Shown here piece by piece: positions 44,796-64,000 of a stretch of 64,000 bases of DNA. This stretch comes from Takakia lepidozioides. Its lineage: Eukaryota; Plantae; Bryophyta. The first letter of the stretch is position 1; each line of letters opens with the position of its first letter. The stretch spans positions 22,630,001 to 22,694,000 of the forward strand of contig CM060733.1 of assembly GCA_030704615.1 (NCBI GenBank), written 5' to 3'. A model generated the notes under the pieces. That model was not told where the DNA came from. It saw only the letters and a list, made by a program, of their open reading frames with translations, and searched no databases. The translations under genes and the position numbers were made by a program.

Positions 44796-45671
44796 ATTTG
44801 CGGACTTCTTGAGCCTCGGTGGGTCTATGATTGAGGGCAGATTTCAGAAGTTCATGATAATAATTTGAGAGCTCTTGAGAGTTATTTGAGAGGTTCTTTA
44901 ATAATCATCTTGTTTATTGCTCAAGCAAGAGTGAGTGTGAAGATAGGGGAGTAATGGGATGAGAGCATTCTGGGCTTAGAGATTGCTTTAGCTTCTCTTC
45001 TCTATAGTCTTCCATCATTCTTGTAGGCCAAAGCTTTTCCGGAAGCGGAGGCAGAGCTAGTTTGGATAGAGACTTGACCATCTTGCAGGTTTATTGGAAC
45101 CGCAAAGAGATCGATTGATTTAAGGTGTGGGAGGTGTTGTTGTTTGAGTTTCCTGTATTTGGATCCTCCTCCCACACATGCATAGACTTTGCGCCATGCT
45201 AGTTTGGTTTGGGCGCTTACTTTTATAGGTGGTTGTGCCGAAAATATTGTGGACGGCCAACCTCGAGCGTGCTGTCGGTGATGAGGCTGGGGTGATGACT
45301 AACAAACCATCATTGTTTCTCTTATGGTGAGGCTGGGTTGATGACCAGCAGACCATAGGAGTGCTTGCGGTGGATACAGATGCAGGTTCAGGTTATGAAC
45401 ATAGTATTCCAAACCATAAGCCGCAACAGGTTCTCTACCCGGTTACCTTGTGGAAAGAGGGATTAGAGACAAATTGATAGCTAGTTTGAGTGTGAGTTTT
45501 CATCGCGGAGGTGCCACCAGTTGCTGAGGAGAGTGCCGGTACGAGCACCAGCGATACTAGTGGTTTAGGCCACCTTCACCTTCAGTGTCTTCTGAGGAAG
45601 GTTCGGATTCGGAGTCAGGAAGATTCTTGCCGAGGGTGTAAGCCATTTCCGTGCCATTGTGGTAGGATACA

Positions 45672-48354
45672 ATGGAGGAAATGTATGGAGCTACTAAGGG
45701 GCCACGTTGATACTCTGGAACTGTGGGCACCATCGAGCTCGATGATTTCATACATGAGTTTGATAGTTGGTGTGATTTGCAGCAGATGCGCAATCCACAA
45801 CTACTTACGCCTTTTATGGCGTGGAAGAGGCTGTTTCAGCACCTTGAAAGGCCGCCTATGGATGACTACCATGAGTTTAGGCGGGGAAATGAGGTGGAGA
45901 TTGAGGAGTGGCGACAATATTGGTCACCTGACTATGTCTCCATCACTAGAGGCACAAGGGTAGCGGCGACACCAGCAGCTACACCAACATCCCCAACTGC
46001 AAGCACTAGTAGTGGGACAAATAAAGATGAAGCTGGGAAATCCACTCAAGCTCCTGCTACAGCACCAGCACCCGTGCCTACCTTTAATCCAGTTGTGGAG
46101 TTCTTCGAGGAGTTGAGGAGAAACTACCAAGGAATAAGGACGGAGAAATTGCGGAGATTGCAAGAGTTCCAGCGCAAGCCTACTGAGAGTTTGAGGGAGG
46201 CTTACACGTGCATGAGATGATTGATAAATGTAACCCAAGGGGTTACGGAAGCTCAAGCAGTCCAATTCTGGTATGGGATATTGGACAAGGAGCTGAGGAG
46301 AAGGGTGCGGGATGCAACTCTCCTACAAGTGGCCCAACCCACCTTAGCAAACGTGTTTTTGCTGGCAGAGTGGATAGAGCTCAATATGATGGAGGAGCGA
46401 GTGGTCATGGTGGGGTTTGGTAAGGAGACACAACGGAGTGGGTCTCCTAGCCAACAACAACCACTACCCCAACGTGCTCAAGGCAACAAGGGGGCTCAGG
46501 CAAAGCCCAGGGAAGGACAGATAGGATCTCAATTGCAGAGGTCACTTCCTTCATTCTCAGGCCAACAACAGTCGGGTGTGACATGTTGGGATTGTGGAGG
46601 ACCCCATGTTGAGAGAGATTGCCCGGAGAAAGCCAAAGGGCCGGCACAAGCACAGCCTACACAACTACAGTGTGGGCATTGTGGCAAGTATGAGCATGAG
46701 GAGACCCATTGTTATGACTTGCATCCTGAACTACGGCCAAGCCAGTTCCAAGGGGACAATGGTGGCCGAGGACGAGGCAATGTAGTCCAGAGAGGTAGAG
46801 GAGGCAGAGATCGCAGTAGAGGTCATAACCAAACCCAAGGAGCACAAGGTCAAGATCAAGGTCATGACCAAGGCATGGTGGATAGGCTTGCCCAGCTAGA
46901 GTAACGTCTTGCTACCATGGCCACTACTCATGTTGTGCCAGCTCCAAGGCCTGAGGTTCAAGCCCCACTTGCACAACCTCGTATGCCTAAGGAAGACCAG
47001 ATTGGTATGGGCTTCATGTGTGGAGCCGCACTTGCAAGACCATTGCATGTGGACTCTGCAGCTACTTTCACTCAAGCAGCAACGCGTGCTCCTGAGCCAA
47101 GAGAAGCAGATGTGGATTTTGATCCACAAAAAGAGGAAGCAAGTTGACAGACAAGGCTTTCGCAGTCTTACACATTGGCTGCGACAGTACCAACTACGCC
47201 ATCGATGGCACCCGCTCGCCCAAGTGTGTCAGAGGTAGAGCCATGAGTATCATTGGGAAGAGTTGGTGTAACTCGGGAAATATCAGTGGCTGGTGCTGCA
47301 AAGCAAGGTGCAGCCAATACATTGTTGGGGGCGGCTACGGCAATTTGCCAAGCTCCATTTTTTTCTGCTACGACAATTGCAATGCCGGGGATGCGGCCAG
47401 CTGCAGTGTTTAGACTGGCAGCTACACTCTGTGAGAGTGGTGATGCATCGGCACTATCTGCGGGGATAGCGGATAAGGTGCAATGCATGGATACCCTGGA
47501 TTCAAAGATGAAGACAGCCACAGCTACGCCATGGCAAGCGGCAGCTGCGAGGTTGCAGGAGTTGCCAGCTAGGCCAGCCATTGAGCGCAGTATGGTGACT
47601 CCTGGGATAGTCCTGGTCGAAAATCAGGATGGTGTGTTTTAGTTGGGTGGCCCAGCCGGGAGGAGGTATAGGCCACTGCGGGTCTTGTTGGACTCGGGAG
47701 CACAGCCATTGATGTTGGGAAGAGCAGCAATTACAAGCTTGGGCCTTACAGAGGCGGATTTGGAACCTTGCCTTTTTCAAATTCAAACATCTTTGGGCGG
47801 TTCAGAGAAGGCACAAGGGATTACACTTCAGAGCTCTTCATTCGATTACAGCCGGATCATCCTACGAACGGCTCAGTCATGAGAGCTAAAGCCATTGTTA
47901 CGGACACAATGTCTTATGATGTGCTTGTTGGTGGGGCGGTGTTATACCCCATGGGATTCACTCTAGACTTTTGGGAGGAAACAACATCCTATAGGCCGGA
48001 ATGGCAATCAGGAGATGGCTGACGTGCACCGCTCCCAGTGCGGTTTATTGGGAATGTAGCAGTGGATCATAAGAACATGATGCCCACATTGGCTGCATTT
48101 TAAAGGGTGGTGGCTTGGGGTGGTATGCTCTTGGAGAGCAATATCCATGCAGATGATAGGCCATCACCTGATGAGGACAAACAATTGGCATACAAGGCTG
48201 ATTAGCTTCCTCATGTGCCTGTGCATATTCCACTCAGGGGTAAGGTTGGGAATTTGCATCGAGTAGTAGGCGAGTGTGTGAACCAAGCATGACAAGAGGC
48301 CTTTCCATTGATGAGTGAGGGGAGTTCGGTGACATCACCTGGACCTCCTCAGTT
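45672..48354 (+). pseudogene. gag-protease-linker pseudogene of the sister element
   Basis: ORF fragments 45723-46220, 46221-46904, 46917-47147, 47253-47642 and 47643-48022 run in series, broken by stops. Confidence 0.9.
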
Positions 48355-51300
48355 TGTCGTGGCCCTTTGCCTTGAGGGCGGGGGGTCGGGATACAAGAGG
48401 GGCCGCCCCTATGGTGGGGGCAGTGGCAACAATAGATATGGGGGCTGAAGCACCCTTGAGTGCCCAAGGCACTCAAGGAGGCGGAGGCGCTCACTAGGTG
48501 GAGCCCCGCACACCGGGTTGCGGTGGGGGTGGTTCTACGAGGGATGGTGGTAGCTTAGTGGGACTTAGTGAGGGTGGCATATGACTCACCATGGGGCGGA
48601 GACCTTGTGGTGGGAGTCGTGGGGAGTCTTGGGACTCATCATGGTCCAATGGGGCCGTGGTGGGTGCGCCAAGACTCACCGCGACTCACCACTGGGAATC
48701 GAGGATTTTCGTGGTGGTTCGCCATAAAATGACTGTGTTGTTTGTGAAACCCCGCAGACAGTCATAGAAGTATATATAGGGAGTAGTAACCCCGAGAACG
48801 GTGCAAGCCCGTTGGTGACCAAAAACTAGTGAGTAAACGTGCGAGCCGGAAAGCGACCAAGGTGTGGGGAGCTGTTCCGGACTGCCAACAACCAAAGGGA
48901 ATTTCCACTAGGCCCAAATTGAGAGAGGGTCTTGTGGAGGAATAAAGGGGGACCGTTATGTCTCGGTGAGCAGCCGAAACTTCGAGTTTGGGAGTTAGAC
49001 GCGTACATCAAAGCGAGTAACTATGACTTGAAGGGGAACTTACCGAAGTGAGGTGCGCGACACTTGGTATCAGAGCTTAGAGTTCAGTACCCGATCGTCC
49101 TTGAGATCGGCCTCATCATGGGGTCGGGCAAGCCAAAGCGAAAGCGGAACGGCCCGAAAGATGATGATCCTGGTAAGCCCGGTGGAGGCGACGTGTCACC
49201 AAAGCGGCAATTTGAGGAGGCGATTCATGCTTTTGAAAGCAAGGCCGCTCAAGAACGGGAGGAATCTGGGGAGTCGGAGCCCGAGGACTTCCCGGAGGCT
49301 CCGGCAGACCAACAAATGTCTCCTATGCCAGCAGCATTTTGGGAAGGGTTGTTGGCGCAGTTTGGCGGGACGTTGAAAGACGTGTTGAGGGCGGCTAATG
49401 CCACTTATACTAAGGCAAAGTTTAAGGTGAAGCCTAAGGAACCCGACACCTTCGAAGGCGTCCAAAATCGGAAGACACTCAACATCTGGCTCTTGGAGCT
49501 GGAGCAGTATTTCCGGGCGGCCAAGTTGAGTGACGAGGATCGGGTGGAAGTGGCTCCCACCTATTTGAGGGGCTATGACCAACAATGGAGGCAGAAACGC
49601 CTTGATGACCAAGGTCCAAACCAAGAAACCTTGAGCTAGAGTGGGTTCAAGGAACTTATGAAAAGACAGTTTGTGCCCCTCAACGCGTCCTGGCTCGCCC
49701 GGACAAGATGAGGAATTTGAAGCAAACGGATGATATTCGGGGATATGTTCAGGCTTTCAATGTGCTGTTGCTCGAAGTCGCGGATATGGCTGAACTAGAA
49801 ATGGTCTTCAACTTTGTGGCGGGATGGGCCCCATGGGCCAGACGGAAGTTGGAGGAGAAGCCACCTAAGACTTTGAACGAGGCCATTGAAAGGGCTGAAT
49901 GTTTTTCGGATGTCCCTAGGGGTGAAAAACAAGGTCGTACGGAGCAACACCACAAGAAGACCCGGCGGCAGGGTGGTTCCTTCTGACTAGAAAAGAAGTG
50001 GGATATGCCTCACGGCGACAATGGCACATGGAAATTGAAGGGAGGGCTTTCACACGTCAAGGCGGCACCGGGTGCTCCGAAAGGAAAATCAAGTACGGCG
50101 GCTTACGGCGGACAGAATGCGACCTTCGATGGAGTGTGTTTAATTGCGGGGAGCTCGGATACATGGCCAAGAAGTGCGCGAAACCCCGACAATTGAACAT
50201 GACTCGGGCGACCACGGAGCTGCCCGAAGATTCCATCAGCCGCTTGGTGGAAGCGGTGGTCGCCAAGACTTGCAAGGTAGGCAACTACTCTTGTGAGTTG
50301 TATGAGGAGACTTCGATGTTCCTCTTCAGCTGGGGAGTTGGGAGGAACGTAAGAACTTCACCATTTGCGAGATCGATGGAGTGGATCTCATTTTGGGGAT
50401 GACATTTTTAAGCAAATCCGGAGCGGTCATAGATGGCCGCAAGAAAGTAGTCACGCTACTGGTGGCGAAGTTTTACGAGTGTCGGAAACGCCCAACCCAG
50501 TGGGAGGGCGAATAAACCTGCTGTCAGCAAAGAAGTGGGCCGTGGAGGAGCCACATCCCCAGTTTTTCACTACAGGAAAAAGTAGGGGTTTGCGACGCCG
50601 CGGCGTCGTAAAACAACCCTTTTCGGGCAGGGGGAAAAACCCAAATTTGCGACGTCCGGGCGTCGCAAGCCCGTCACTAATTTGCGACAATTGGGGGTCG
50701 CAAATAGACAAAACCGCAATTTGCGACACCGACGCGATTTGCGAGCCAAAAAAAAAAAAAAAAAAAACCTACTCTGCAATGCAGAATTAACACCGTCTGG
50801 GGGTCGCAACATGCGACGCCCGGACGTCACAATTTAAAGGGGTAAATTTGAATTTAGGCGGGAAAATTTGAATTTGAAATTTGAATCTCAAAAACTTGTT
50901 GACCATTGACTCCGGTTCTGTCTAATGGCGATATGTTCATTGTGCTACATATCTGATGCAATGCATACTTGAACCTAAGACCTCCACGCTATAACATTTC
51001 TAAGACACTACAAACTAACCAACACACCTACGCTACATCTATGTATCACAAAAATAATCTAAAAATATATATATATATACATATATAAAGATTTCCTTCA
51101 AGAGCCTTCAAGTTCATTCTAAGGGGGTTTCTCTTGTGACGCCGGGGAGTTGCAACCTCCACAGCCTTAATGCCCAGCCCCAGCCCCAGCCCCAGCATCG
51201 TCACCGTTGTTGCACCCCCCCCCACCGCTTGGTGCCTTAAGCAACGTCCTTGTGATGACCTAAGTTGACCACAACACCATTGCGACCTCCTGTGGCGACG

Positions 51301-54026
51301 CTGTAGCGACCCCCTGGCGTCGCAACGTTGGGCGTCCCAACGCCGAGCGCCCCAGCGACGCTTTTGTGAAGTTGAGCGCCGCAAAGCCTTTAAAAAAAAA
51401 ATTCCCACTATGGTGATGCTTTTTTGATGCCCTGACATCGCAGAGGCTCCCTTAGTGATGCTTTTGCGACGCCCTGGCGTCGTAACGTCCCCGAAAAAAA
51501 TAAAAAAATAAAAAAATCTGGGATTTCCGACGCCGTGGCGTCGCAAGAAAAAAAATCCGTCGCAACGAGGGCCCTCTTTCCCCCTTCATGCCACCTTACG
51601 ACGGCTGGGCGTCGTAACGGTGTCACAGCGGGGGATTGCGACGCCGGGGCGTCGCAACAAAACGCCGCGGGCTCGGCGTCGCAGGCTCAGCGCCGCGCGG
51701 GCCGTTGAGGCGCGGCTGGCGTCGCAAACCCCCCTCATTTACTGTAGTGTTTGCTTTACGTAAGACAAGTGGAGGGAGAAGGCGATAGGGAGCCGAGCCC
51801 AGATTGGATCAAGGGGATCTTGGAGAAATACCATGATGTGATGCCGGAGGATTTACCGAGCGACTTGCCACCGCGAAGAGGAGTTGACCACAAGATTGAG
51901 GTGATACCGGGATTTGAGCCGCCTGCCAAGGCGCCCTACCGATTGAGCCACAGAGAGTTGGTCGAACTGAAGGCTCAGCTCAAGGATCTAATGTCAAAGG
52001 GGTATATCCGACCGAGTAAGTCACCCTACGGAGCCCCGGTACTATTCGCAGACAAGAAGGATGGGACGTTGCGGATGTGTGTCGATTATAGGGCTCTAAA
52101 TAACATGACTATAAAAAACCGGTACCATTTGTCAAGGATCGACAACCTCTTCGATCGGTTGGCAGGAGCGAAGTATTTCAGCCGGATCGATTTGCGCTCC
52201 GGCTACCATCAAATCCGAGTGGCGGAAGGAGATGAGGAGAAGACCGGTCACCGCGTGCAAGACAAGATATGGTTCGTATGAGTTCTTGGTGATGCCTTTT
52301 GGGCTCACCAATGCACCCGTGATCTTTAGCACGCTAATGAACAGCCTTTTCCAGGAGTGGTTGGATGACTTTGTGATCGTGTACATCGACGACATCTTGG
52401 TGTACTCGAAAACAAAAGAAGAGCACCTGGAGCACCTCAAAAGGGTGTTCCAGAAATTGCGGGAAAGGAAGTTGTATGCCAAAGCTTCAAAGTGCGAATT
52501 CGGGGTCACAAAAGTGGAGTTCCTGGGGCATGTGATTACACAAGATGGGATCAGAATGGATGACATAAAGGTGAGGGAAATCTTGGACTGGGAGCCTCTG
52601 ACTTCGGTCCCGGGAGTGCGATCCTTCCTAGGACTCGCCTCCTATTACCAAAAGTATGTGAGAAATTTCACCAAGATCGCGGGGCCGCTATCGGACCTTC
52701 TGTGTAAGTCTAAGATATGGGTATGGAATACCTTTTGTGGCCAAGCTTTTACCGAGTTGAAGTAGCGGATGGCGAAAGCTCCAGTCCTGAAAATCCCGGA
52801 GTTCGACCGTCCATTTGAGATTCATACAGATGCGTCGGACTTCGCAATTGGGGGTGTACTCATGCAGGATGGACGTCCACTGGATTACGAAAGTAAGAAA
52901 TTGAATGAAGTGGAGCGACGGTGGCCTACGCACAAGAAAGAAATGAAGGCGGTGGTGCATTGCCTTGAGCTTTGGCGCCACTATGTTGGTTCCAACCCGG
53001 TGAAGGTGTTCACGGACAATGTCACGATGAAATATTTTGCCACGCAACCTAAGTTGTCCCTAAAACAACTTAGGAGTCAAGACACTTTGGCGGTGTTCGA
53101 CGTGGATATCCAGTACAAACCGGGACGAGACAATGTGGTGGCCGATGTTTTAAGTAGAAAGCAGCAGCTCATGTTGGTGTACAGGGGCGAGACGGCGCTC
53201 CAAAGGAAGATCCGGAAGGCTTATCGGAAGGATGAGATGGCGAAGTCCGTGATGCGGGACTTGAAGATAGGGATTAAATCACAGCTCCACTTGCACAATG
53301 GACTGCTTCGGGAGCTAAAGCGCATCACGACACTCTTGAAGAAAGAGTATTTCTGACCCAAACTGAGGGAGGAGGCCGAGGAGTATGTCAAGACATGCAC
53401 CATATGCCAACAAAACTGGAGCGAGTACAAAAAGCAAGCGGAGCTGTTACAACCCTTGCCGATTCCAGAGGGGTCTTGGGAAAATGTCTTGATGGATTTC
53501 ATGACTGCTATGTCGTTGTCAAAATAATTCGATGCAATCATGGTGGTGGTGTATAGGTTCAGTAAAATGGGCCATTTCATTCCTACCAAAGAGACGATAA
53601 CAGCACAAGAGACGGGGCGACTTTACTTCGTCCACGTCTTCAAGCATCATGGACTCCCGAAGGATATTGTCTTCGACCGCGATCCAAAATTTAAAAGTAA
53701 ATTTTGGAGAGCACTTTGGAAGAAAATGGGGACGAGGCTCAAGATGAGTACCGCCTTCCGACCTACGACGGACGGCCAAACGGAAAGAGTGAATTCCGTG
53801 GTGAAGCAAATCTTGCGGGATGTGTCGGCACACCAATCAGACTGGGTAGAGCACTTGGATGCGGCAGAGTTCTATTATAATAACGCAAAACACTCCGCAA
53901 CGAGAGTGTCCCCTTTCGTATTGGTCTATAGAAAAGCACCTCTGGTGCCGATAAGTTGGGCCGTCCAGGACGTTAAGGAACCGGCAGCGGCGGCAGTGCT
54001 AGAAGAACGCGAACGTTTGTTGAAGC
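48355..54026 (+). mobile_element. Galadriel-like chromovirus copy B (5' LTR 48355-49062, PBS 49065-49076, degenerate gag-pol), truncated within the integrase
   Basis: LTR TGTCGT...GCGACA plus TGGTATCAGAGC. Gag, RT (YIDD), RH (TDASDFAIGGVL) and INT (DRDPKF, DGQTERVN) are present. The protease active-site region is deleted at ~50312 relative to copy A. Confidence 0.92.
50568..51749. mobile_element. Non-autonomous CACTA element (1182 bp)
   Basis: CACTACAG...CTGTAGTG TIRs, TSD TTT, and many TGCGACGCC/GGCGTCGCA subterminal repeats. Removing it restores pol. Confidence 0.92.
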
Positions 54027-54112
54027 TGTCGTGCGCATACATATCGCTACACAACTACATCGCTGTCCAAACCACACCACACATATATGCACAATAAAGT
54101 AGTCTGCCACAA

Positions 54113-54554
54113 TGATAAGAAAACTAGAAAACACACTGCTCACACCAGAAACAACATGAATCCATCGCTATCACTCTTTAAAACAGAAGTCGAGCCAGGG
54201 GCACCCCAAGCTATGGGGACTCCACCCCACAACAACCTACACTCCCATCATAAGCACACTCAAATCTAAACGCATGAAGGAGCTCGGTCGCGCAGGCTCA
54301 ACTCGAGAAAGATGAGCCGCGCGACTGCCGCTCTCGTGAAGATAAGACGGACCAGGTGTCAAACTAAACTTGACACCTGATTTAACACTTGACCTAAATC
54401 CAAGTGTTAAATACAAATAACTAGTTTTATTCTAGCTGTTTTCACACTGTGCTTATTTAACTTGACAGCTGTCGTGCGCATACATATCGCTACACAACTA
54501 CATCGCTGTCCAAACCACACCACACATATATGCACAATAAAATAGTCTGCCACA
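54113..54554 (-). repeat. 3' LTR (~442 bp) TGTGGCAG...CTTATCA, followed by a partial second copy (54024-54111)
   Basis: It is preceded by the PPT AGGGGGGCGAT (54555-54565). 54024-54111 repeats 54467-54554. Confidence 0.8.
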
Positions 54555-54814
54555 ATCGCCCCCCTAGCTGGTGGATAGGTCCCTCTACCTCCAGATAGCT
54601 ACAAGATGTAATAGCCACAGCCGTACTAAGTCCTCTATCACTGTCCCTATTGTACTCAAACTCTATAGACCAAGAGGCCGGGTACAAGAGTAGCCCCATC
54701 GTTAGTCGCCATCTTGCAATCTGTGAACTTGAGCCAGGACCTCGTGTGTTCAAGGTCTCCTAGTAGCTGGGCCTTGCGTTTTTTGTTAGCCTTCCATGGT
54801 TGTATCCACTCCCA

Positions 54815-55010
54815 CTATCCAATGCAATGTGGACATAACCAATCCCCATCCGGAACCATCTCAAGAGGTGGAGTCAAGCATCCCATATGCCAACCTCTAG
54901 AGCATCGATCACACACCAGCATGGTGGCTGCCCCTTTAGCAGACCCACACAACATGCACCTCAAACCTGCAGATACCACTGCCAGGTTTGGGTCAATCCT
55001 GCCATCACAT
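54815..55010 (-). CDS. PHD finger (C4-H-C3); C-terminus of the polyprotein after a 1-nt frameshift
   Basis: CMLCGS...MLVCDRCSRGWHMGCLTPPLEMVPDGDWLCPHC. Confidence 0.9.
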
Positions 55011-57948
55011 TCGGAAGGTGACATGGCGCACAATTACGCACATGGTCCTTCCAAGTTATGCCATCCCGACCCTCCAAGACCAAGACGCCTGAGGGCAAGA
55101 CCTCTCGAACCCTCAAAATAACACGTCCTGCAGTCACATCCAGGGTCGTAGGAGCAGTCTGCTGCAGATAGACATAGTCACCAGGGTTGAATCTCCGAAC
55201 CCCAGGACGATAGCCCCCACCACGTATGGTAGCATACCTCAACGTATCACGGTGTTGTGCAATGGCAAGGTTCTCGAAAGCCATGGGCATGACTCTCTTG
55301 AACAACTCTGCACGCTGCTCACATGCACGTGCCCACACGTCCGGATCGTCAAGGTTAAGAACTGTAGCAGCTTCTCTGCGAATGGATGTAGGCAAATCCG
55401 GCTCTCGGCCAAAGAGAAGAAAGTATGGTGAGAAGGAGGCAAGTGATGCTTGCTTGCTGAACCTGTAGCCCATGGCTAACCAGGGTAACTGAAGGTCCCA
55501 ATCTCCTAGGTGTCCCTTCTGCAAGCCATACTTGCGCAAACCCCTCTTTACTGTCTGAACAACTCTCTCTGCCAAGCCATCGGCTTCAGGATGATCCCGA
55601 GAAGTGGTGCGGTGGTCTATCAAGGCCTTGTCACACAAAGCCTGAAACTCCCCCAAGAACTCTCTCCCTTGGTCCGTGAGTACCTCAGCTGGAGCACCGA
55701 ATCGGCTAAGCACACAATCCAGGAATGCATACGCAGCTCCCTCACTAGCCTTATCAGGCAATGGAACCAATTCAATCCACTTGGAGAAGTGCTCCACCAT
55801 CACCAACACGTACTTGTTGTGGCGCATGGTCAGTGGCAACGGCCCTGCGAAGTCAAGACTCCACCTGTAGCCCAATCCCATGATCGGAAGAGGGTGCAAT
55901 TGTGGAGTAGGGGCGTTGAATGAAGCACGCACCCTGTCACACACCATGCACCTAGCCACAAATTGTTGCACCTCTGTGTGCATACCACGCCACCAATACT
56001 GCCCCTGCAGTAGACTATGAGTGCGTCGCACCCCAAAATGCCCCAACTCCTCATGGGCATGCCGCACTAACCGTGCCCGCTGTGTTGGGTGAGGCACAAT
56101 CCTCACTCGACCATCCTCCCACACTCGGAGCAGGTGTGTCCCCTCCCACCTGAACCTCTTGGCTCGTTGTAGGATCCGATCCCTCTCCTTGGCAGTCATA
56201 GTGGCTGCCGTGTCTCCACTGCGGAGGTAGTCCAACACAACTGAATCCTCATGTATATCTTTGGCGCCACCCTGCTCATTGCTGGCCTCAGGGTCCTCAG
56301 ACACTTGATCTACAGTCATCCCTGTTGTAGGTCCAACCTGGCCTTCCGCTGCCAAGATACACAGAAATGCAGATGCATGCCATCCGGGCACCATCTCCTC
56401 GTCCGTCTCACCATGCCACCGAGCTCCAGTGTCATCCTGCTGGCTCGTGCATGGATTGCGACTCAACCCATCTGCATTTCGATTGACCAAACCCGGTCGA
56501 TGCACCACCTGAAAGTCATACTCTTGAAGGATGAGTGCCCACCGTGCAAGCTTCCCCGTAAGCTTGTCTGACTCCATCAACCACTTGAGTGGTTGGTGAT
56601 CCGTGACAAGGGTGAAGAGATTGCCGTATAGATAGCACCTGAAGTGTGCCACGGCCCACACTGCAGCTAAGCATTCTCCCTCATATGAGCTATACTTAGA
56701 CTCTGCAGCATTGTTCGAGCGGCTAGCATAAGCCACTACGAACTCTCTTCCCTCATCATCCACCTGTGTGAGCACCGCTCCAAGCCCCAGCATGCTCCAA
56801 TCTGTATGCAGCTGAAAAGGACGCCCCCTGATAGGTCGTCTCAAGATGGGCGCCGAGGTCAACCTCGCCTTGAGCTCTTGAAAAGCTTGTTCTTGCTCAT
56901 CTTCCCACTGCCACTCCTGGTCCACCTTGGTCAGCTTGGTTAGAGCCTTTGCAATGGCACTAAATCCCTTAACAAACCGTCTGTAATAGTTTGCTAACCC
57001 CATGAAAGCTCGAACTCGGCTCACATCCGTGGGGCGTGGAACCTGTGCAATGGACTCTACCTTAGTCTGCTGTACCCCCAATCCTCCAGGATATATCATG
57101 TGACCCAGATACTCAATCTGGTTGTGGAAAAACTTGCACTTGCCCGGATGTAACTTCAATCCGTGCGTCCTCAAGCGCTCAAATACCCCCTGAAGGTGTC
57201 TCTCATGCTCCTCCACCGTAGCACTAAAGATGATGATGTCATCTATGTAGCACCGAGCAAACTCCACCCCTGCTAGAATCCTGTCCATGACTCTTTGAAA
57301 CTCAGCGGGAGCGTTTTTAAGCCCAAATGGTAAGAACCGCCACTGGTATAGGCAATCCTTCCCGTGCTCATTGATCCCCCAGAATGCCGTCTTTTGCTTA
57401 TCCGCCTCCTTGATCGGCAACTGGTGATATCCGGATCGTAAATCCAACGTGCTAAAGACCTTGGAATGCCCAATGGCATCAAAGATCTCCTCTGGTGTTG
57501 GCATGGCATACCTATCGGACTTGGTCTGACGATTTACAGGCCGGTAATCACCGCACATACGTCTCTCCGTCCAATTGCCATAGACATCCTTCTTAGCTGG
57601 CATCACTGTGGCTGAAGCATACTCTCCACCAGAGAGCTCCACCAAACCTGCCTCCCAGAGATCTTGAGTCCTCATCTGAATCAAAGACCTCTCCATGTCA
57701 CTGTATCTATAGGGTCTCCGAAAGATTGGCGTGTCAGTGGCCAACTCAATACGGATCTCTTGACCCTTCAGTGCTCCCAAGTCCTTCAAACTGAAGGCAA
57801 AGCAATTCCTGTAAGCCCTCAGGAACCGCCGTATACGTCGTCTCTCTCCTCCGGTGACAATGGGTCCAATGTCAGGCTCCCAATTGTCCTCCGTAACTGC
57901 AACCTTAAGTCCAGTGGGCTTAGAGGTAGAGGACGCGTCCCGTGGTTG
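54961..57948 (-). CDS. pol: reverse transcriptase, RNase H, integrase (frame open from 57948; the ORF track starts it at TTG 57789)
   Basis: [22 protein letters not shown]; TDWS...YEGECLA...TDH; HEELGH..C..C, WSLDFAGP, LTDQG, GLAER. No stops over ~990 codons. Confidence 0.95.
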   Translation of the reverse strand, partial: QPRDASSTSKPTGLKVAVTEDNWEPDIGPIVTGGERRRIRRFLRAYRNCFAFSLKDLGALKGQEIRIELATDTPIFRRPYRYSDMERSLIQMRTQDLWEAGLVELSGGEYASATVMPAKKDVYGNWTERRMCGDYRPVNRQTKSDRYAMPTPEEIFDAIGHSKVFSTLDLRSGYHQLPIKEADKQKTAFWGINEHGKDCLYQWRFLPFGLKNAPAEFQRVMDRILAGVEFARCYIDDIIIFSATVEEHERHLQGVFERLRTHGLKLHPGKCKFFHNQIEYLGHMIYPGGLGVQQTKVESIAQVPRPTDVSRVRAFMGLANYYRRFVKGFSAIAKALTKLTKVDQEWQWEDEQEQAFQELKARLTSAPILRRPIRGRPFQLHTDWSMLGLGAVLTQVDDEGREFVVAYASRSNNAAESKYSSYEGECLAAVWAVAHFRCYLYGNLFTLVTDHQPLKWLMESDKLTGKLARWALILQEYDFQVVHRPGLVNRNADGLSRNPCTSQQDDTGARWHGETDEEMVPGWHASAFLCILAAEGQVGPTTGMTVDQVSEDPEASNEQGGAKDIHEDSVVLDYLRSGDTAATMTAKERDRILQRAKRFRWEGTHLLRVWEDGRVRIVPHPTQRARLVRHAHEELGHFGVRRTHSLLQGQYWWRGMHTEVQQFVARCMVCDRVRASFNAPTPQLHPLPIMGLGYRWSLDFAGPLPLTMRHNKYVLVMVEHFSKWIELVPLPDKASEGAAYAFLDCVLSRFGAPAEVLTDQGREFLGEFQALCDKALIDHRTTSRDHPEADGLAERVVQTVKRGLRKYGLQKGHLGDWDLQLPWLAMGYRFSKQASLASFSPYFLLFGREPDLPTSIRREAATVLNLDDPDVWARACEQRAELFKRVMPMAFENLAIAQHRDTLRYATIRGGGYRPGVRRFNPGDYVYLQQTAPTTLDVTAGRVILRVREVLPSGVLVLEGRDGITWKDHVRNCAPCHLPNVMAGLTQTWQWYLQV

Positions 57949-60900
57949 CTATGCTGCAACCTCTTGAGCAGTACCCCTTCCTGCTCAGTCAATGACAAGG
58001 CCTCATCCTGCCCCATCATCTCATCATTGAGAACCTCCTCATCCCGAGAAGAATCCCCAACCTCATCCATCACAGCTGCCTTCGCTGCCAACTCCCTCTG
58101 AACCTCGAGCACCTCCCACGTGTGCCATGGATGTCTACACCTCGTGGTCCTCACCGGCTCGCCCCCACTCGCTGCCTGTACCGTCTCGGTAGGCAGAGAG
58201 ACCGTCAAGGGAAGTGCACTCCGCACTCTACGTTGCTCAGCCATAGCCAAGCTGACAATCCAGGTCAAGCAATTGAGATCCATTGCTTGCCCCAACACCT
58301 GACGACGTGATGCCTCAGAAAGAGAAGGCACCGCCGTGGTCCCAGTGGAAAACCCCATAGCCCGCTCTCGCTCGTCGGCATTAGGCTCCACTAACTGCTG
58401 CAACTGAGCATCCCACAGGAGGCCAGGTCCACCATCCCGAAAAGCATGGGATCCTGGGAAGCTGAGCAGTGTAGGTAATGCTGCTCGTGGTTGACCCACC
58501 CTGTTGACCACTGCCAAAGGCGAACGGTCATCGTGTCTCACACGTTGAGACTGCCTTCCTGTGTCCAAAATGCCATCCACGGTGAGGTGTGCTGGCCGCT
58601 GCACCCCATCAAATGCACGCTTGAGCAGTGCGGGTGGCATCAAGTTAGTCCACCATAGTCGTGGACGATGAGCCCGTGACCCCACTGCAGCTGCATCCAG
58701 CAACACTGCTGACCCAAGCCACGACCGGACTTGATGCACACTGGCCATCACCCTGGCCCGAGAATCACCCATCAGTGGTACATTCTCCAAGATGTATGCT
58801 GGAGATACAGCTTGATGAAGCTGCAAGCAGCGCAAAATCCGCACCATCTCCCAAAACAGACCCGTCCTCGAGTCTCGCAATCCATTGCCATGCCCGGCTG
58901 ATGAATGCCCTTGGCAGGGCCAACCTGCCACTATCAGATCAATGGAGCCAACCTGCTCCAAATCTTGCGCCCCCAACAAGGAAATGTCTGCTGGCAAGGC
59001 TTGTTGGTATCCACGAACTGCAGACACAGGCAACAAGTCAGGGTACTGCTGTACCAACTGAGCCACATGGCGCAGTGAGACGCGTCGTGCAGTCTCATCC
59101 CTCTCCACATACAGGTAACGCCTTACCCGCACACCTGCCTGTAGCACAGCAGCCAATCCGGTGCTGATCCCGCCAAACAAGTCCAGAAGGCAAATGCCTT
59201 CATCCGGCCGCTGCCACACAAGAGGTGTGGTGTCCAATGGCGACAACTGAGGTGGCCCTGGTGCAATCACCGCACTCTCCTCCTCTCCTGACGGTACAAA
59301 AGCTTCTACCCAAGCTTGTTGCACCCGTCCATCAGCAGCTTGCTGCAAATCCTTGCTCGTACCCCACAACGGAGTGTGAGCAACCATGGCAGGCAACTCC
59401 GCCGTACCATGCATGTCATCCTGCTCTGCTGGAGGTGGCACATCCTCTGCATGGGCATTGCCTTCCAGCAACTCTCCAGGCCAACTAACTGCAGCTGTGA
59501 AGGCGGCTAGTGTTGGCATCTTGCCCCGCTGGGCAGCTGCAATACCCCCAATGAATGTCACAGGGAGCTGTGCACGGCGACCATCCCCTGACTGCCATCC
59601 AGGCCTGTAGGATGCTGACTCCTCCCAGAAATCCAGGGTGAAGCCCATGGGGTATAACACTGCCCCACCAACGAGGACATCGTAAGAGACCGCGTCTGTC
59701 ACAATGGCCTTGGCTCGCATCACTGAGCCATCTACAGGATGATCCGGCTGCAGTCTAATAGCCAACTGATGCCGTGTCATGCCGCGAGCCTGCTCTGATC
59801 CTCCCAGAGATGTCTGTATCTGGAAAGGACAAGGCTCCATATCCGCCTCCATGAGGCCCAAACCTGCAATAGCAGCTCTGCCCAACATCAGTGGCTGAGC
59901 TCCTGAGTCCAACAAGACCCGCAGTGGCCGGTACTTCTTGCCTGCCGGTCCACTCAAAGTGAAAATGCCTCCCTGGTTGTCTAACAAGACAACTCCAGGT
60001 GTCACCATGGCGCGCTCAATGGCTGGCCTAGCTGGCAGCTCCGTCAACCTGGCAGCTGCAACTTGCCATGGCGCAGCCGTGGCAGTCTTGACCCTCAAAT
60101 CCGAGGATCCCTCTGCCACTATACCTTCCACTAACTCCGCAGAAGATGAAGTGACCTCCCCACTCTCACAGAGTGTTGCTGCTAGTCTGAACACTGCAGC
60201 TGGTCTCACCCCCGGCGTCGCAATCATGGTTGCCGAGAACAGTGGGGCTTGACACACAGAGGTGGCTGCCCCCAATAACACACCGGCTGCACTAGCCTTG
60301 GTAGCAGGTGTCAGTGCTGCACGTGTAGCTCTCCCCAATGGCATAGTAACCTCCGCCTCGGTAACAGTCGGGCGAGAACTAGGTGCCATGGATGGCGTTG
60401 ACACTGTCTCCGCCAAGGTGAATGACTGAGGCAGCCTCGCCTGACGGCTTGCCTCCCCACGTTGTGGATCCAACTCCACCTCTGCACCTCGTGGCTCAGG
60501 AACTCGTGCTGCTCCTCGAGTCACGGCTGCAGCAGACTCCACCTGCTCTAGTGGTAGTGCTGCTCCGCACATGAATCCCATGCCTCCCATATCTCCTCCC
60601 TCAGGAGCAGGAGGTGGACCATCCCGCCTGGGAGCCGGTACCGCCTGAGCTATAGCCATGGCAGCGAGCCTCTGCTCTAGCTGCTGAAGCCGATTGGCCA
60701 TGCCTTGGTCAACACCCTGACCTCCGCGTCCTTGGCCATGTGGAGCTTGCCCTTGGCCTGCACCTCGTGCCCGACCACCTCGTCCTCTTTGGGCTGGTCC
60801 ACCTCGCCCCCGGCCACCATTGTTCCCTTGGAACTGGCCTGGGCGCAACTCAGGATGCAAGTCATAACACTGGGCATCTCCATGCCCATACTTGCCACAA

Positions 60901-61270
60901 TGCCCACACTGCAACTGTGCAGGCTGTGCTTGTGCCGGCCTTCTGCCACTCTCTGGGCAATCTCTTTTGACATGGGGTCCTCCACATGTCCAACATATCA
61001 CCCCTGGTTGCTGTTGGCCTGCAAAAGATGCCACGGGCCTCTGCACCTGAGGTCCCCTGTAAGCTCCATGGAACTTGGGCTGGGCAACCTTGCCCCCCTG
61101 ACCACGCTGTTGGGCAGTCCCTTGTGCCTGTGGGCTGACAGCTGTGCCCCGTGCAGGCATGTCCTTGCCAAATCCAATTGTAACAACTCGCTCCTCCACC
61201 ATGTTGAGCTCAATCCGCTCAGCCAGCAGAAACACATCTGCTAATGTGGGTTGGGCTGCTTGTAACAGGT
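57819..61270 (-). CDS. gag C-terminus (two zinc knuckles), aspartic protease and C5 cytosine DNA methyltransferase (domain ~58240-59195)
   Basis: CWTCGGPHVKRDC, CGHCGKYGHGDAQC and LLDSGA. DNMT motifs: I (LDLFGGISTG), IV (GWPCQ), VI (ENV), VIII (HRPRLWW), IX (ERERAMGF), X (LGQAM). Confidence 0.95.
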
Positions 61271-61966
61271 TGCATCTCGCACCCTTCTCTTGAGCTCCTT
61301 GTCCAGAATTCCATACCAAAACTGGATTGCCTGAGCTTCAGTAACCCCTTGGGTCACACTTATCAAGCGCCTCATACGAGTGTACGCCTCTCGCAGGCTC
61401 TCACTGGGTTTGCGCTGGAAGTCTTGCAAACTTCGCAGCTTCTCTGTCCGTACACCTTGGTAGTTCCTCCGCAACTCCTGGAAGAACTCCACCACCGGGT
61501 TGAATCTAGGCACATGTGTTGTAGTCGTGGCAGGAGGAGTAGTAGCACCTTTTGAACTGGTACCACCTACAGAAGTACCAGCACTACTTGCTCCACTACT
61601 AGTGCTGGCAGTGGGAGCTATTGGTACTGATGCAGCTACTGGTCGCGTCGTGCCTCGAGTAATGGAGACGTAGTCAGGTGACCAATACATCCTCCACTCC
61701 TCAATCTCTGCTTCATGTCCTCGCCTGAACTCGTGGTAATCGTCCATCGGCGGGCCTTCCAAATGCTGGAACAGTCCCTTCCACGCCATGAATGGGGTGA
61801 ATAGCTGTGGATTGCGCATCTGCTGCAAATCACACCAGCTGTCGAACTCCTGGATAAAGTCATCCAACTCGATTGTGCCCACAGCTCCAGAGTACCTACG
61901 AGGCCCCTTGGTAGCTCCATACATCTCCTCCATGTCGTCCCACAACAATGGCGAATGAAAGTGCAC
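61241..61966 (-). CDS. gag N-terminal/capsid part (first ATG at 61933); joins the next ORF across a 1-nt frameshift near 61268
   Basis: MHR-like FQRKPSESLREAYTRMRRL. The sister copy reads RDATLLQ continuously across the junction. Confidence 0.88.
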   Translation of the reverse strand: MHFHSPLLWDDMEEMYGATKGPRRYSGAVGTIELDDFIQEFDSWCDLQQMRNPQLFTPFMAWKGLFQHLEGPPMDDYHEFRRGHEAEIEEWRMYWSPDYVSITRGTTRPVAASVPIAPTASTSSGASSAGTSVGGTSSKGATTPPATTTTHVPRFNPVVEFFQELRRNYQGVRTEKLRSLQDFQRKPSESLREAYTRMRRLISVTQGVTEAQAIQFWYGILDKELKRRVRDATCYKQPNPH

Positions 61967-62667
61967 ACCAGTTGATGAAGCCTCCGAGTCTGTGTCTGAC
62001 TCTACAGTAATTGAGGGTGGCGGTGAAGGTGGTCTGAACCGAATACCTCGTCTTGTGAACCCACTCTCACTGTTATGCCTGTAGCCGTACTCCCCTCAAA
62101 ACCCTTGGGTAACTCCGTAATGACACTCACAATGTGCACCTCCTCCACGTGACACTATAAGGCTCTAGTACTAATCTAATAGTGACACGGGTGGGCACCT
62201 GTTGCAGTTTAAGGGTCATATCCCAATGGCTCAGGGCACCTGCACCTGCATCCACCGCAAGAACTCCTATGGTTGGCTGGTCATCAACCCAGCCTCACCA
62301 TAGAAGAAACACTGGTGGTCTTGCTGGTCATCACTCCAGCCTCACCACCGACAGCATACTCTAGGATTGACCGGTGATCAAATCCGGCCTAATCCCTATG
62401 AAAGCAAGCGCCCACACAAAACCAACATGGCGCACAGTCAAGCATGCAGGTGTTGGGGGGGATCCAAACACAAGAAATCAAAACATCAACACCCCCACAC
62501 CAAAATCCAGCTGCAATGCTGATCCTGCAGAATAGCCCAGCCCAAAACCCCGGACTGACTGACCTCCACCAAGAGAGGCTTTGGCAACTACAAGTACAAG
62601 GTAATAAAAATAGTACAGAGATGGAGGGGAAGAATAGAAGCCCGACCAAGCAAGATCTAATCCTGAT

Positions 62668-63417
62668 CTATGCTATCAACTGCCAGACTTCTCTCAAAGT
62701 GCCTCGCTCTGCATGATGGTAAGGTGTAGGAGGTATATCTATGTCCAGAAACCTGCCACTAACCTTGTCCCAAGCTACAGTAGCTCGCTCTAACCAACCC
62801 TCCTCCTCTTTCTGCCAGGTAGAGACAAAGCAATACTCCCCTATCTCCCGCTCACTGAATACTAAAGAAAACAAAGGTAGGGTCTGATAGTCTCTCAACT
62901 CGAAAGCTTTGAGACGGTTGCGGGTGTCCTCATTGCGAATGACTGCATCTCCTTCACGCACAACAAACATGTCATTGCTGATGAACCCCCGCTCGTGGTT
63001 GCCCTGTGCAGAGCGTATCCGGCTGCAACCATGTCTGATTGCACAAACTTGTGTAGCTCCTGCTCCTCTGCTCCAGTACACCACGGCCTTGTGGCTGAAC
63101 ACCTTGGTCCCCGGGGCTGTCTTTGGCTGTGTTCCAAGCCTAGCTTTCACCCACTTTGGTATTTCACCTACAGCTGCAGAACTGCTGGCTCCAACAGAGT
63201 TCTGACTGTCCAAGGCGATATTGAGGCCCTCAATGCCAACTACAGCAGTCTGTTGTCTACTGCTAATGCCTGACTCCCAGTATGCAATCAACTCGTCCAA
63301 CTGTTCTCCACTCAAATCAGTCTGAGTTCCTTGGGAAACATAAATCCTGTCCCCTTGTGTGCACAGGCTAAGAGAAGAGACCTGCCCTTCAATTACGTCC
63401 TCATTTCCCCCAGCCAT
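62668..63417 (-). CDS. 249-aa ORF of unknown function upstream of gag
   Basis: ATG-initiated, uninterrupted, protein-like composition, same strand as gag-pol. I recognise no motif. Confidence 0.55.
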   Translation of the reverse strand: MAGGNEDVIEGQVSSLSLCTQGDRIYVSQGTQTDLSGEQLDELIAYWESGISSRQQTAVVGIEGLNIALDSQNSVGASSSAAVGEIPKWVKARLGTQPKTAPGTKVFSHKAVVYWSRGAGATQVCAIRHGCSRIRSAQGNHERGFISNDMFVVREGDAVIRNEDTRNRLKAFELRDYQTLPLFSLVFSEREIGEYCFVSTWQKEEEGWLERATVAWDKVSGRFLDIDIPPTPYHHAERGTLREVWQLIA

Positions 63418-64000
63418 GCAAGGAGTACATCCACAGATTTGTCTCTCATATAGACCAGCACAGGTTCTAGAGACAGGATTGTGGATCTTTTATGGCACAC
63501 TCACACTCTAAAAATTCCATAGATTTTTAGCAGAGTCCCAAAAACAGAAACCAGGTCTAGGTAGGTAGATTTCCCCTTTCTGCAGCTATCCTCCCAAAAA
63601 CTGAGTCAAACGGAGTCCATCTGACAAAGTTATGACCAGTTAGGCTCTAAATCATTTAAATTAGATCAAAAGGTTTTTTTTTTTTTTAACACCAAAACGT
63701 TCTCGCCATTACAACCTGTTCCCAGGTTATCTATGGGTTCCCGAGGCCGTTCCCCTCCAGGCTTCTCCAGGCACCAAGAACTCTCCAACTCCAAGACTCG
63801 ACCTCAGTTATGGATGGGGTATCACACCCTGGAGCAGCAGGCGTGCGATAACGGATTGCCCTGCATCACCGAATTGGGGACAACGGCAGAGCTCGAGCGC
63901 CTGGGCTTAAGCGCATCCGAGATTGATGATCTCCGACACAGTCTCAAGGCATTTCCACATGCCTTTCAGCTCTACATCAGCGGCAGATTTTGAGAAGTCA

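Follow-up and report, generated by a model that had tools for sequence, protein, structure and literature searches.

A DNMT3-like cytosine methyltransferase encoded between protease and reverse transcriptase in a decayed Ty3/gypsy-type retrotransposon of Takakia lepidozioides

Why would a transposon carry its own cytosine methyltransferase? Hosts keep transposons in check mainly by methylating cytosines, which makes a de novo methyltransferase on a transposon a paradox. We studied such a case in a 64,000-nucleotide stretch of the genome of Takakia lepidozioides (assembly GCA_030704615.1, contig CM060733.1, positions 22,630,001 to 22,694,000 of the forward strand). We will call this stretch the window and number it from its first base. 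From 54020 to beyond 64000, on the minus strand, the window almost certainly holds one member of a very abundant family of Ty3/gypsy-type retrotransposons, of the Gypsy-DNMT3 kind; we have little doubt about either its membership or its anatomy. The plan of the element is a long repeat (A1), a leader, Gag, zinc knuckles, protease (PR), a DNMT3-like methyltransferase (DNMT), a UAG stop codon, reverse transcriptase (RT), RNase H (RH), integrase (IN), a PHD finger, and then the repeats B1, A2, and B2. The studied copy is a real and well-preserved, although non-functional, Gypsy-DNMT3 in a land-plant host. The account as a whole, which adds a model of readthrough at the UAG to this anatomy, is likely to be correct.

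The DNMT domain has 331 amino acids (58245..59237, minus strand) and shows the motifs of C5 cytosine methyltransferases, I through X, in their canonical order. These begin at about residue 700 of a 1172-codon open frame. Motif I, ICLLDLFGGISTG, lies at 59157-59195, and YVERD is at 59097-59111. Motif IV, DLIVAGWPCQGHS, with its Pro-Cys pair, is at 58902-58940 (the codon for the catalytic cysteine is 58914-58916). Then come GLFWEMVRIL (58833-58862), ILENV (58779-58793), LDAAAVGSRAHRPRLWWTNL (58641-58700), ERERAMGF (58350-58373), and RRQVLGQAM (58281-58307). Motifs I, IV (PC), VI (ENV), VIII (RxR), IX, and X are all canonical and unpermuted, unlike those of the plant methyltransferase DRM, which is circularly permuted. 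An earlier note on this DNA had listed nine such motifs, and all nine are where it placed them; it omitted that they are on the minus strand. No further DNMT was found in the 64-kb window.

By sequence, by profile, and by predicted fold, the DNMT domain is nearest to DNMT3A/B/C. The 1172-codon frame matches Pfam's DNA_methylase family (PF00145, E = 1e-12), which was the HMMER check that the earlier note proposed. When we compared the single sequence to all PDB sequences with phmmer, the best hit was human DNMT3A (E = 6e-11), followed by DNMT3B/C, DRM, and M.HhaI. A profile of 104 family members separated the candidates more clearly: 4e-27 for DNMT3A, about 1e-24 for DNMT3B/C, 3e-15 for DRM, 4e-9 for M.HhaI, and 1.5e-7 for DNMT2. 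The alignment to DNMT3A spans motifs I-VIII and then IX-X, in order, whereas the match to DRM is limited to about motifs I-IV. An AlphaFold model of the domain, built on the alignment of the 104 members, had a mean predicted local distance difference test score (pLDDT) of 96. When this model was compared to the PDB with Foldseek, the best 50 matches were all catalytic domains of DNMT3A/B/C, with template modelling (TM) scores, on target length, of at most 0.84. Chance cannot account for matches of this strength. A feature search of the ESM Atlas returned generic C5-methylase clusters only. The residues that are kept in at least 90% of the 104 members are the glycine of motif I, GW-CQ--S (motif IV with its cysteine), the EN of ENV, HRxR, and ERE--G. 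The earlier description of the domain as DNMT3-like and unpermuted therefore stands, with DNMT3A at the top of the sequence and profile rankings and DNMT3A/B/C at the top of the fold ranking. Compared to the animal DNMT3A/3B/3C catalytic domain, the motifs are in the same order, but identity to human DNMT3A is only about 20%. Also, the element's domain forms part of a polyprotein, comes without PWWP or ADD domains, and has about 25 more amino acids between motifs VIII and IX.

The rest of the polyprotein is of the Ty3/gypsy type. Three long open frames succeed each other on the minus strand (62095->61244, 61337->57822, and 57948->54964). The first (61244..62095, 284 codons) encodes the capsid part of Gag (Pfam Retrotrans_gag, E = 2.4e-4) and is 56-71% identical to the Gag of a second copy in the window and of copies in Marchantia and Calypogeia. 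The second (57822..61337, 1172 codons with no internal stop) encodes the nucleocapsid knuckles, the protease, and the DNMT. Its zinc knuckles are CWTCGG (60978-60995) and CGHCGKYGH (60882-60908), and the motif of its aspartic protease is LLDSGA (59898-59915); the protease segment is homologous to segments of relatives that Pfam calls Asp_protease_2. The third frame (54964..57948, 995 codons) encodes RT, RNase H, and integrase. It matches RVT_1 (2e-32), RT_RNaseH (7e-36; two RNase H models matched), Integrase_H2C2 (3.5e-16), and rve (6e-14), and it is 80% identical to the corresponding frame of a Marchantia polymorpha element that we will call L001. The order of protease, RT, RNase H, and DDE integrase, with CCHC knuckles in Gag, is that of Ty3/gypsy elements. 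So Pfam hits and motifs uphold the earlier note: the element is of the Ty3/gypsy type, and its DNMT3-like domain is complete and lies between protease and RT. The single open frame that the note gave to the knuckles, the protease, and the DNMT is the 1172-codon frame; RT is not part of it in this copy, where the frame of RT is offset by -1.

At the C-terminus of integrase is a PHD finger (54824..55006, minus strand), which is out of frame in this copy. We found it with tblastn, using the C-terminus of the second open reading frame (ORF2) of the Marchantia element; the search gave two matches that meet at base 55006, which belongs to both, and identity across the PHD finger is 72%. It has the pattern C-x2-C...C-x2-C-x4-H-x2-C...C-x2-C and ends with CLTPPLEMVPDGDWLCPHC. 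In the orthologous ORF of Marchantia, the PHD finger is in frame (Pfam PHD, E = 1e-10). We take it to resemble the PHD fingers that read unmodified H3K4, and it sits where chromoviruses have their chromodomain.

Why is the RT out of frame? The studied copy is decayed by three 1-nt deletions, at about 61267, 57973, and 55006, so it cannot make the full polyprotein. The deletion at 61267 separates gag from the knuckle-protease-DNMT frame: the site reads GCAAC-CTG here and GCAACTCTx in the window's second copy, in Marchantia, and in Calypogeia. Because of the deletion at 57973..57974, the DNMT frame no longer lines up with the UAG and RT. If that base is restored, the DNMT frame is in register with the TAG at 57951-57949, and the RT frame follows directly. 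The third loss, near 55006, shifts the frame of the PHD finger (55006->54824). The copy is young, since none of its roughly 2,400 codons is a premature stop.

We compared this copy to others by aligning Logan contigs from four public runs of the same organism (X1, X5, X6, and X8) to positions 55350-61349. At 61267, the extra base is present in all contigs from X6 and X8, in 37% of the depth of X5, and in 28% of the depth of X1. At 57973/57974, it is present in all contigs from X6 and X8, in about half of the depth of X5, and in about 13% of the depth of X1. Near-identical copies that lack the first two deletions thus exist in the same organism's public runs. X1 is the likely source of the assembly, and its contigs are short and gap-rich, with unreliable depths; some of the three deletions may be consensus errors of the assembly. 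Since the deleted forms also occur in gap-free contigs of X5, copies of both forms exist. On this 6-kb stretch, 57,404 contigs from X1 align at 95% identity or above (contig depths are not copy numbers). A 2173-nt contig from X6 (56151-58322) spans RT, the UAG, and the C-terminus of the DNMT, and carries the frame-restoring base. This supports the linkage of DNMT and RT in an independent data set. X6 comprises 49 M letters of contigs and contains 59% of the sampled words; its contig hints at transcription of intact copies.

What divides the DNMT from RT in functional copies? In the studied copy, the sequence after the DNMT is UAG-CAA-CCA (57943..57951, minus strand; the TAG is at 57951-57949), which is a candidate readthrough site. 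At nine related loci, one stop divides DNMT from RT within a single frame. Its context is TAG CAA CCA in the studied copy, in Marchantia L003 and L004, and in two intact loci, the metagenome contig L005 (fully intact, with 1357 + 1047 codons) and L008 (1456 + 1043 codons). It is TAG CAA CAA in Marchantia L001, TAG CAA TCA in Calypogeia (L002), TAA CAA CCC in a decayed copy from Sphagnum (L006), TGA CAA TTC in Klebsormidium nitens (L009), and TAG GAT GAG in Closterium (L010). TAG-CAA is in the homologous column in two Marchantia families, Calypogeia, L005, and L008. In the alignment of the linker, TAGCAAC(C/A)A forms an island of identity within an indel-rich and poorly conserved stretch (mean column identity 46%).

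Type I readthrough, known from tobamoviruses and further plant viruses, has the consensus UAG_CAR_YYA (Skuzeski 1991, as reviewed in PMC3542737). The studied copy, L003/L004, L005, and L008 (all UAG CAA CCA) and L002 (UAG CAA UCA) fit this consensus. The likeness to the tobamovirus signal is an exact fit to the hexamer, in a plant host; the differences are that the signal here belongs to a retrotransposon, where it separates a methyltransferase from RT, and that we infer readthrough from the sequence. We think that readthrough at the UAG is probably programmed. In functional copies, the ribosome would usually halt at the UAG, which would make Gag-PR-DNMT the abundant product. Occasional readthrough of the type I signal would yield a minor product extended by RT-RH-IN-PHD. 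Since the leaky UAG follows the DNMT, the DNMT would lie on the Gag-protease side and would be made in Gag-like amounts.

The ends of the element do not follow the usual plan either. Instead of the two identical flanking long terminal repeats (LTRs) of Ty3/gypsy elements, this family has split direct repeats, A1...B1-A2-B2. In the studied copy, the terminal short repeat B2 (54020..54113, minus strand) forms the 3' end of the element, with ...CGACA and then flanking DNA. It is 98-99% identical to the internal copy, B1 (54462..54556). The second copy of the long repeat, A2 (54114..54461), is identified by its position between B1 and B2. The B1/A2 junction is a palindrome, GACAGCTGTC, which looks like joined ends. 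The purine run AGGGGGG lies just upstream of B1, at 54565-54559, and the run TAGGGGGGCG directly precedes B1 both in the studied element and in Marchantia. Marchantia L001 has the same TAGGGGGGCG-B1 arrangement and the same ...CGACAG-C-TGTCATG... junction. Copies in Marchantia show the full A1...B1-A2-B2 layout, with repeats that are 96-100% identical and with 10.4-12.3 kb between A1 and A2. These copies begin with TGTC, end with GACA, and are flanked by target duplications of 4 bp (GGTT and CCGG), so integration is integrase-like even though the repeat layout is not canonical. Neither A1 nor a canonical LTR pair was found in the 64-kb window. The A1 of the studied copy must lie beyond position 64000, which explains the lack of an LTR pair in the window.

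How widespread are these elements? A word-indexed protein search found 58 proteins, including many "hypothetical proteins" of Marchantia polymorpha (60-74% identity in the DNMT) as well as proteins from Calypogeia fissa (75%) and Sphagnum fallax (49%). An exhaustive search of 1.84 billion representatives found 265 clusters at E < 1e-30, most of them polyproteins of 1000-3400 amino acids. The word-indexed searches returned only transposon-borne relatives, and the best 150 matches of the exhaustive search were likewise all of transposon type. The nearest elements are from liverworts (74-76% DNMT identity). Other named hosts are Scenedesmus (where the protein is annotated as "pol"), Klebsormidium, Closterium, and Cymbomonas. 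Fully intact relatives are present in Marchantia polymorpha and in metagenomes. In particular, Marchantia L001 (6845-17657; AP019869.1, chr4 at about 10.22-10.23 Mb, gene Mp_4g09160) appears to be a fully intact element and is a candidate for an active copy. Its frames of 1362 and 1045 codons are parted only by a TAG, its A repeats are 99% identical, its B repeats are 100% identical, and it is flanked by the duplication GGTT.

An element of this kind has been described before (de Mendoza et al. 2018, Nat Commun 9:1341, PMC5890265): KnitGypsy-Dnmt3 from K. nitens, whose gypsy pol includes an unpermuted Dnmt3-like domain. That paper reports Ka/Ks < 0.2, describes the repeats in a legend "as in DIRS", and attributes the acquisition to the K. 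nitens lineage (no liverwort was sampled). Our comparisons indicate that the studied element belongs to the same lineage. Both have a DNMT3-like domain that follows the knuckles and protease in a gypsy-type pol, with a single in-frame stop before RT-RH-IN. In K. nitens (L009, DF238327.1), a 1118-codon frame ends with the DNMT, and after one in-frame stop, RT-RH-IN continue in the same frame. The DNMT domain of K. nitens KFL_013780020 (P0122) is 39-40% identical to that of the studied element (E = 1.7e-55). The reported DIRS-like repeats fit the split repeats in the studied element and in Marchantia, but the 7.5-kb K. nitens contig is too short to show them. The DNMT is under purifying selection on both sides. 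The differences are that here the family reaches a very high copy number in a land-plant host, while K. nitens has few copies; that the stop context is UAG-CAA-CCA here and UGA-CAA-UUC there; that the studied copy is broken; and that a PHD finger follows integrase here, while the K. nitens contig ends before that point. In short, a homologous DNMT3-like domain inside a gypsy-type polyprotein, split repeats, and purifying selection together identify the family as Gypsy-DNMT3.

The earlier note had already named de Mendoza et al. 2018 as the precedent, and the shared domain order, stop, and DNMT identity agree with this. It had also suggested that such an element might be new to land plants. Among the papers covered by a full-text search, none explicitly describes land-plant members of Gypsy-DNMT3. 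The novelty is nevertheless smaller than that suggestion: the lineage was already published from Klebsormidium, and dozens of gene models from Marchantia, Calypogeia, and Sphagnum are already public as "hypothetical proteins." Furthermore, a 2026 preprint already writes "streptophytes (Gypsy-DNMT3)." What is new here is the conserved UAG-CAA-CCA stop, the purifying selection on the DNMT (from a Marchantia pair), a second architecture that forms a clade, and a wider range of hosts. The newly listed hosts are Marchantia, Calypogeia, Sphagnum, Closterium, and Scenedesmus.

In the second architecture, the DNMT lies between RNase H and integrase (RT-RH-DNMT-IN-PHD). When we sorted the proteins by domain order, about 68 were PR-DNMT-(RT) and about 103 were RT-RH-DNMT-IN-PHD; Pfam confirmed this on examples. 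Members with the second order include P0045 (locus L007) and a protein from a chlorophyte (P0075, Scenedesmus KAF8056149.1). In a tree of the DNMT domain (quick maximum likelihood, unrooted, and drawn from its midpoint), all 61 members with the second architecture, plus 4 of unknown type, formed one clade, with a support of 96 in the Shimodaira-Hasegawa-like approximate likelihood ratio test (SH-aLRT). The first architecture, which includes the studied copy, the liverwort elements, K. nitens, and Closterium, makes up the remainder. Since the second architecture is a single clade, the tree suggests that the DNMT changed place once within related elements, or passed between them once.

Is the DNMT maintained by selection? 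Across 325 codons of the DNMT, Marchantia L001 and L003 differ by 0.29 synonymous substitutions per synonymous site (dS) and by 0.047 non-synonymous substitutions per non-synonymous site (dN), so dN/dS is 0.16. Between the studied copy and Marchantia, synonymous sites are saturated, so we compared dN across domains. It is 0.21 for the DNMT, 0.38 for the protease, and 0.37 for the knuckle region; it is lower than in the DNMT for RT (0.13), RNase H (0.08), and integrase (0.08). The reads also contain near-identical copies; of the 40 single-base differences among these that are best supported, 26 are synonymous. The DNMT accounts for 15 of the differences, of which 8 are synonymous, and its replacements are mostly conservative (I/V, T/S, or A/T). 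These comparisons argue that the DNMT is under purifying selection in this family. The earlier note had regarded a domain that occurs in only this copy, or that evolves neutrally, as the end of its idea, and had asked for a dN/dS ratio; 265 clusters, a ratio of 0.16 for the two Marchantia copies, and the excess of synonymous changes fit neither description.

What might the DNMT do? It would enter the particle, probably freed by the protease. It would methylate cytosines of the element's own reverse-transcribed DNA, or else of the integration site; we propose this tentatively, and it may well be wrong. A more specific version is that the DNMT is a particle component in the same stoichiometry as Gag (hundreds of copies) and methylates the nascent cDNA inside the particle or as it leaves, so that insertions would arrive with 5-methylcytosine. 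We think this rather unlikely as stated. Pre-methylated insertions could be camouflage that resembles the host's own methylation, or could be a built-in self-restraint. The PHD finger of the integrase would select chromatin. A transposon-borne DNMT3 can be active: the domain of SymbioDIRS-Dnmt3 from Symbiodinium performed de novo CG methylation in yeast (PMC5890265). This is another retrotransposon-borne DNMT3-like domain under purifying selection. However, the element that carries it is of the DIRS type and has a tyrosine recombinase, its host is from an unrelated lineage, and the authors consider it an independent acquisition; we liken it to the studied element by description.

We also considered that the domain might be under selection for something other than DNA methylation. 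It could methylate the element's RNA (to 5-methylcytosine, m5C), or it could be a nucleic-acid-binding or oligomerising module of the Gag-PR precursor. The KnitGypsy-Dnmt3 protein was made in yeast without DNA methylation, as this would predict. But human DNMT3B failed in the same yeast assay, so the negative result says little. PMC5890265 itself raises RNA methylation for another transposon-borne DNMT, the domain is on the Gag (RNA-packaging) side of the stop, and its motif X is atypical (LGQAMD); according to the supplement of that paper, motif X is poorly conserved in K. nitens members. On the other hand, the catalytic cysteine, the glutamate of ENV, and HRxR are nearly invariant among the 104 members. 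Also, the fold and the profile are nearest to DNMT3A/B/C, which act on DNA, far ahead of the RNA enzyme DNMT2 (4e-27 vs 1.5e-7). Overall, a role other than DNA methylation seems unlikely.

Two other alternatives concern the frames and the origin of the domain, and we give them much less weight. The changes of frame from gag to the knuckles and from DNMT to RT might be programmed -1 ribosomal frameshifts, as in the gag-pro-pol of retroviruses. Both changes are indeed -1, with overlaps of 94 and 127 nt between long stop-free frames, and the extra bases are missing from most of the k-mer depth of X1 (whose contigs are, as mentioned above, unreliable for depth). But neither overlap contains a slippery X_XXY_YYZ heptamer. 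At the gag site, the second copy in the window, Marchantia, and Calypogeia are one base longer and in frame, and contigs from the three other runs carry the extra base at both sites. With that base, the DNMT frame reaches the conserved UAG exactly as at the nine related loci. So we rejected programmed -1 frameshifting, which we can hardly credit given the copy-specific indels and the missing heptamers. The other alternative is that the land-plant elements took up their DNMT independently of the charophyte element, by a separate capture of a host DNMT3. The 2018 paper does put the acquisition "in the K. nitens lineage," without having sampled a liverwort, and the two positions of the DNMT in polyproteins of related elements mean that the domain was moved or captured more than once. 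However, the DNMT is 39-40% identical to that of K. nitens KFL_013780020 and only about 20% identical to human DNMT3A. The domain order and the single in-frame stop after the DNMT are common to the studied element and K. nitens, and Closterium, another charophyte, shares this plan. Finally, the split direct repeats in the studied and Marchantia copies have their parallel in the DIRS-like repeats of the K. nitens legend. Independent capture is very improbable.

Several points weigh against our account of a DNMT3-derived enzyme that is expressed by readthrough and methylates DNA. The only published activity test of a Gypsy-DNMT3, that of KnitGypsy-Dnmt3 in yeast, was negative, and its authors consider it inconclusive (PMC5890265). 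The label "DNMT3-derived" reflects a ranking by similarity rather than a phylogeny with host DNMT3 or DRM. The case for readthrough is drawn from the context of the stop, and not every locus has the full hexamer: CAA-CAA follows the stop in L001, and the stop with its context reads UGA-CAA-UUC in K. nitens and UAG-GAU-GAG in Closterium. In one clade (P0041, P0066, and P0268-P0270), the DNMT runs on into RT with no intervening stop. The 5' end of the studied copy, with A1 and the primer-binding site, is outside the window. Finally, the RNA origin of X6 is a guess, and Logan contigs are no proof of transcription.

The purpose of these methyltransferases has been open since 2018, partly because the sole known host in the plant lineage, Klebsormidium, has few copies and because the enzyme was inactive in yeast. 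The lineage is abundant and recently active in liverworts, and the intact copy in Marchantia polymorpha makes the question testable in a genetically tractable land plant. The UAG-CAA-CCA signal provides a concrete model of expression, which predicts a high dose of DNMT in particles. With two architectures and a spread from chlorophytes to bryophytes, carrying a DNMT is an old and successful strategy in green plants, and not one alga's curiosity. If our proposal is true, then the element sets its own epigenetic state ahead of integration, which could be tested genetically with the intact copies of Marchantia polymorpha.

Several other features of the window are worth describing. Upstream of gag, in the position of the leader, is an ORF on the minus strand (a 273-codon frame at 62671-63489, with a 249-amino-acid ORF that starts with ATG at 62668-63417). 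It has no counterpart in the copies of the family from Marchantia, Calypogeia, Sphagnum, or metagenomes. Since no related locus has a counterpart, we leave it out of the element's coding plan. Conservation of the leader is restricted to the roughly 400 nt that are nearest to gag. Two of the related loci have tandem arrays of 24-26-nt units at their 5' edge, upstream of gag (L005, 1-137, and L008, 83-258).

The second related copy in the window, at 45124-48355 on the plus strand, consists of a leader, gag (45564-46340), and knuckles-protease (46317-48355), with 63-71% amino acid identity. Its gag and knuckles share one frame. It breaks off at the last residue before the DNMT would start. Another gypsy-type element, at 51808-54097 on the plus strand, is only 33-36% identical to the DNMT element in RT/RH; its integrase ORF is at 53540-54097. 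Its homology to other copies in the window ends at about 54027, where B2 of the DNMT element ends. Since the two elements meet tail to tail, it is probable that one inserted into the other.

The base composition of the copies also differs. CpG observed/expected is 0.51 within the element (54824-62095), with a TpG/CpA excess of 1.44, and 0.58-0.67 in the rest of the window. The ratio is higher for the intact copy from Marchantia (0.74) and for that from K. nitens (1.17), which suggests that the three hosts differ in their past CG methylation and deamination. We considered the depletion of CpG in the element as a sign of self-methylation and rejected it as insufficiently specific, given 0.51 versus 0.58-0.67 for the remainder of the window. 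Across 55350-61349, read on the plus strand, a T of the studied copy stands against a C of other copies at 22 places, but an A against a G at only 6. This asymmetry is an excess of G-to-A changes on the coding strand of the studied copy, and it could reflect deamination of the minus-strand cDNA, a bias of RT, or the history of the lineage.

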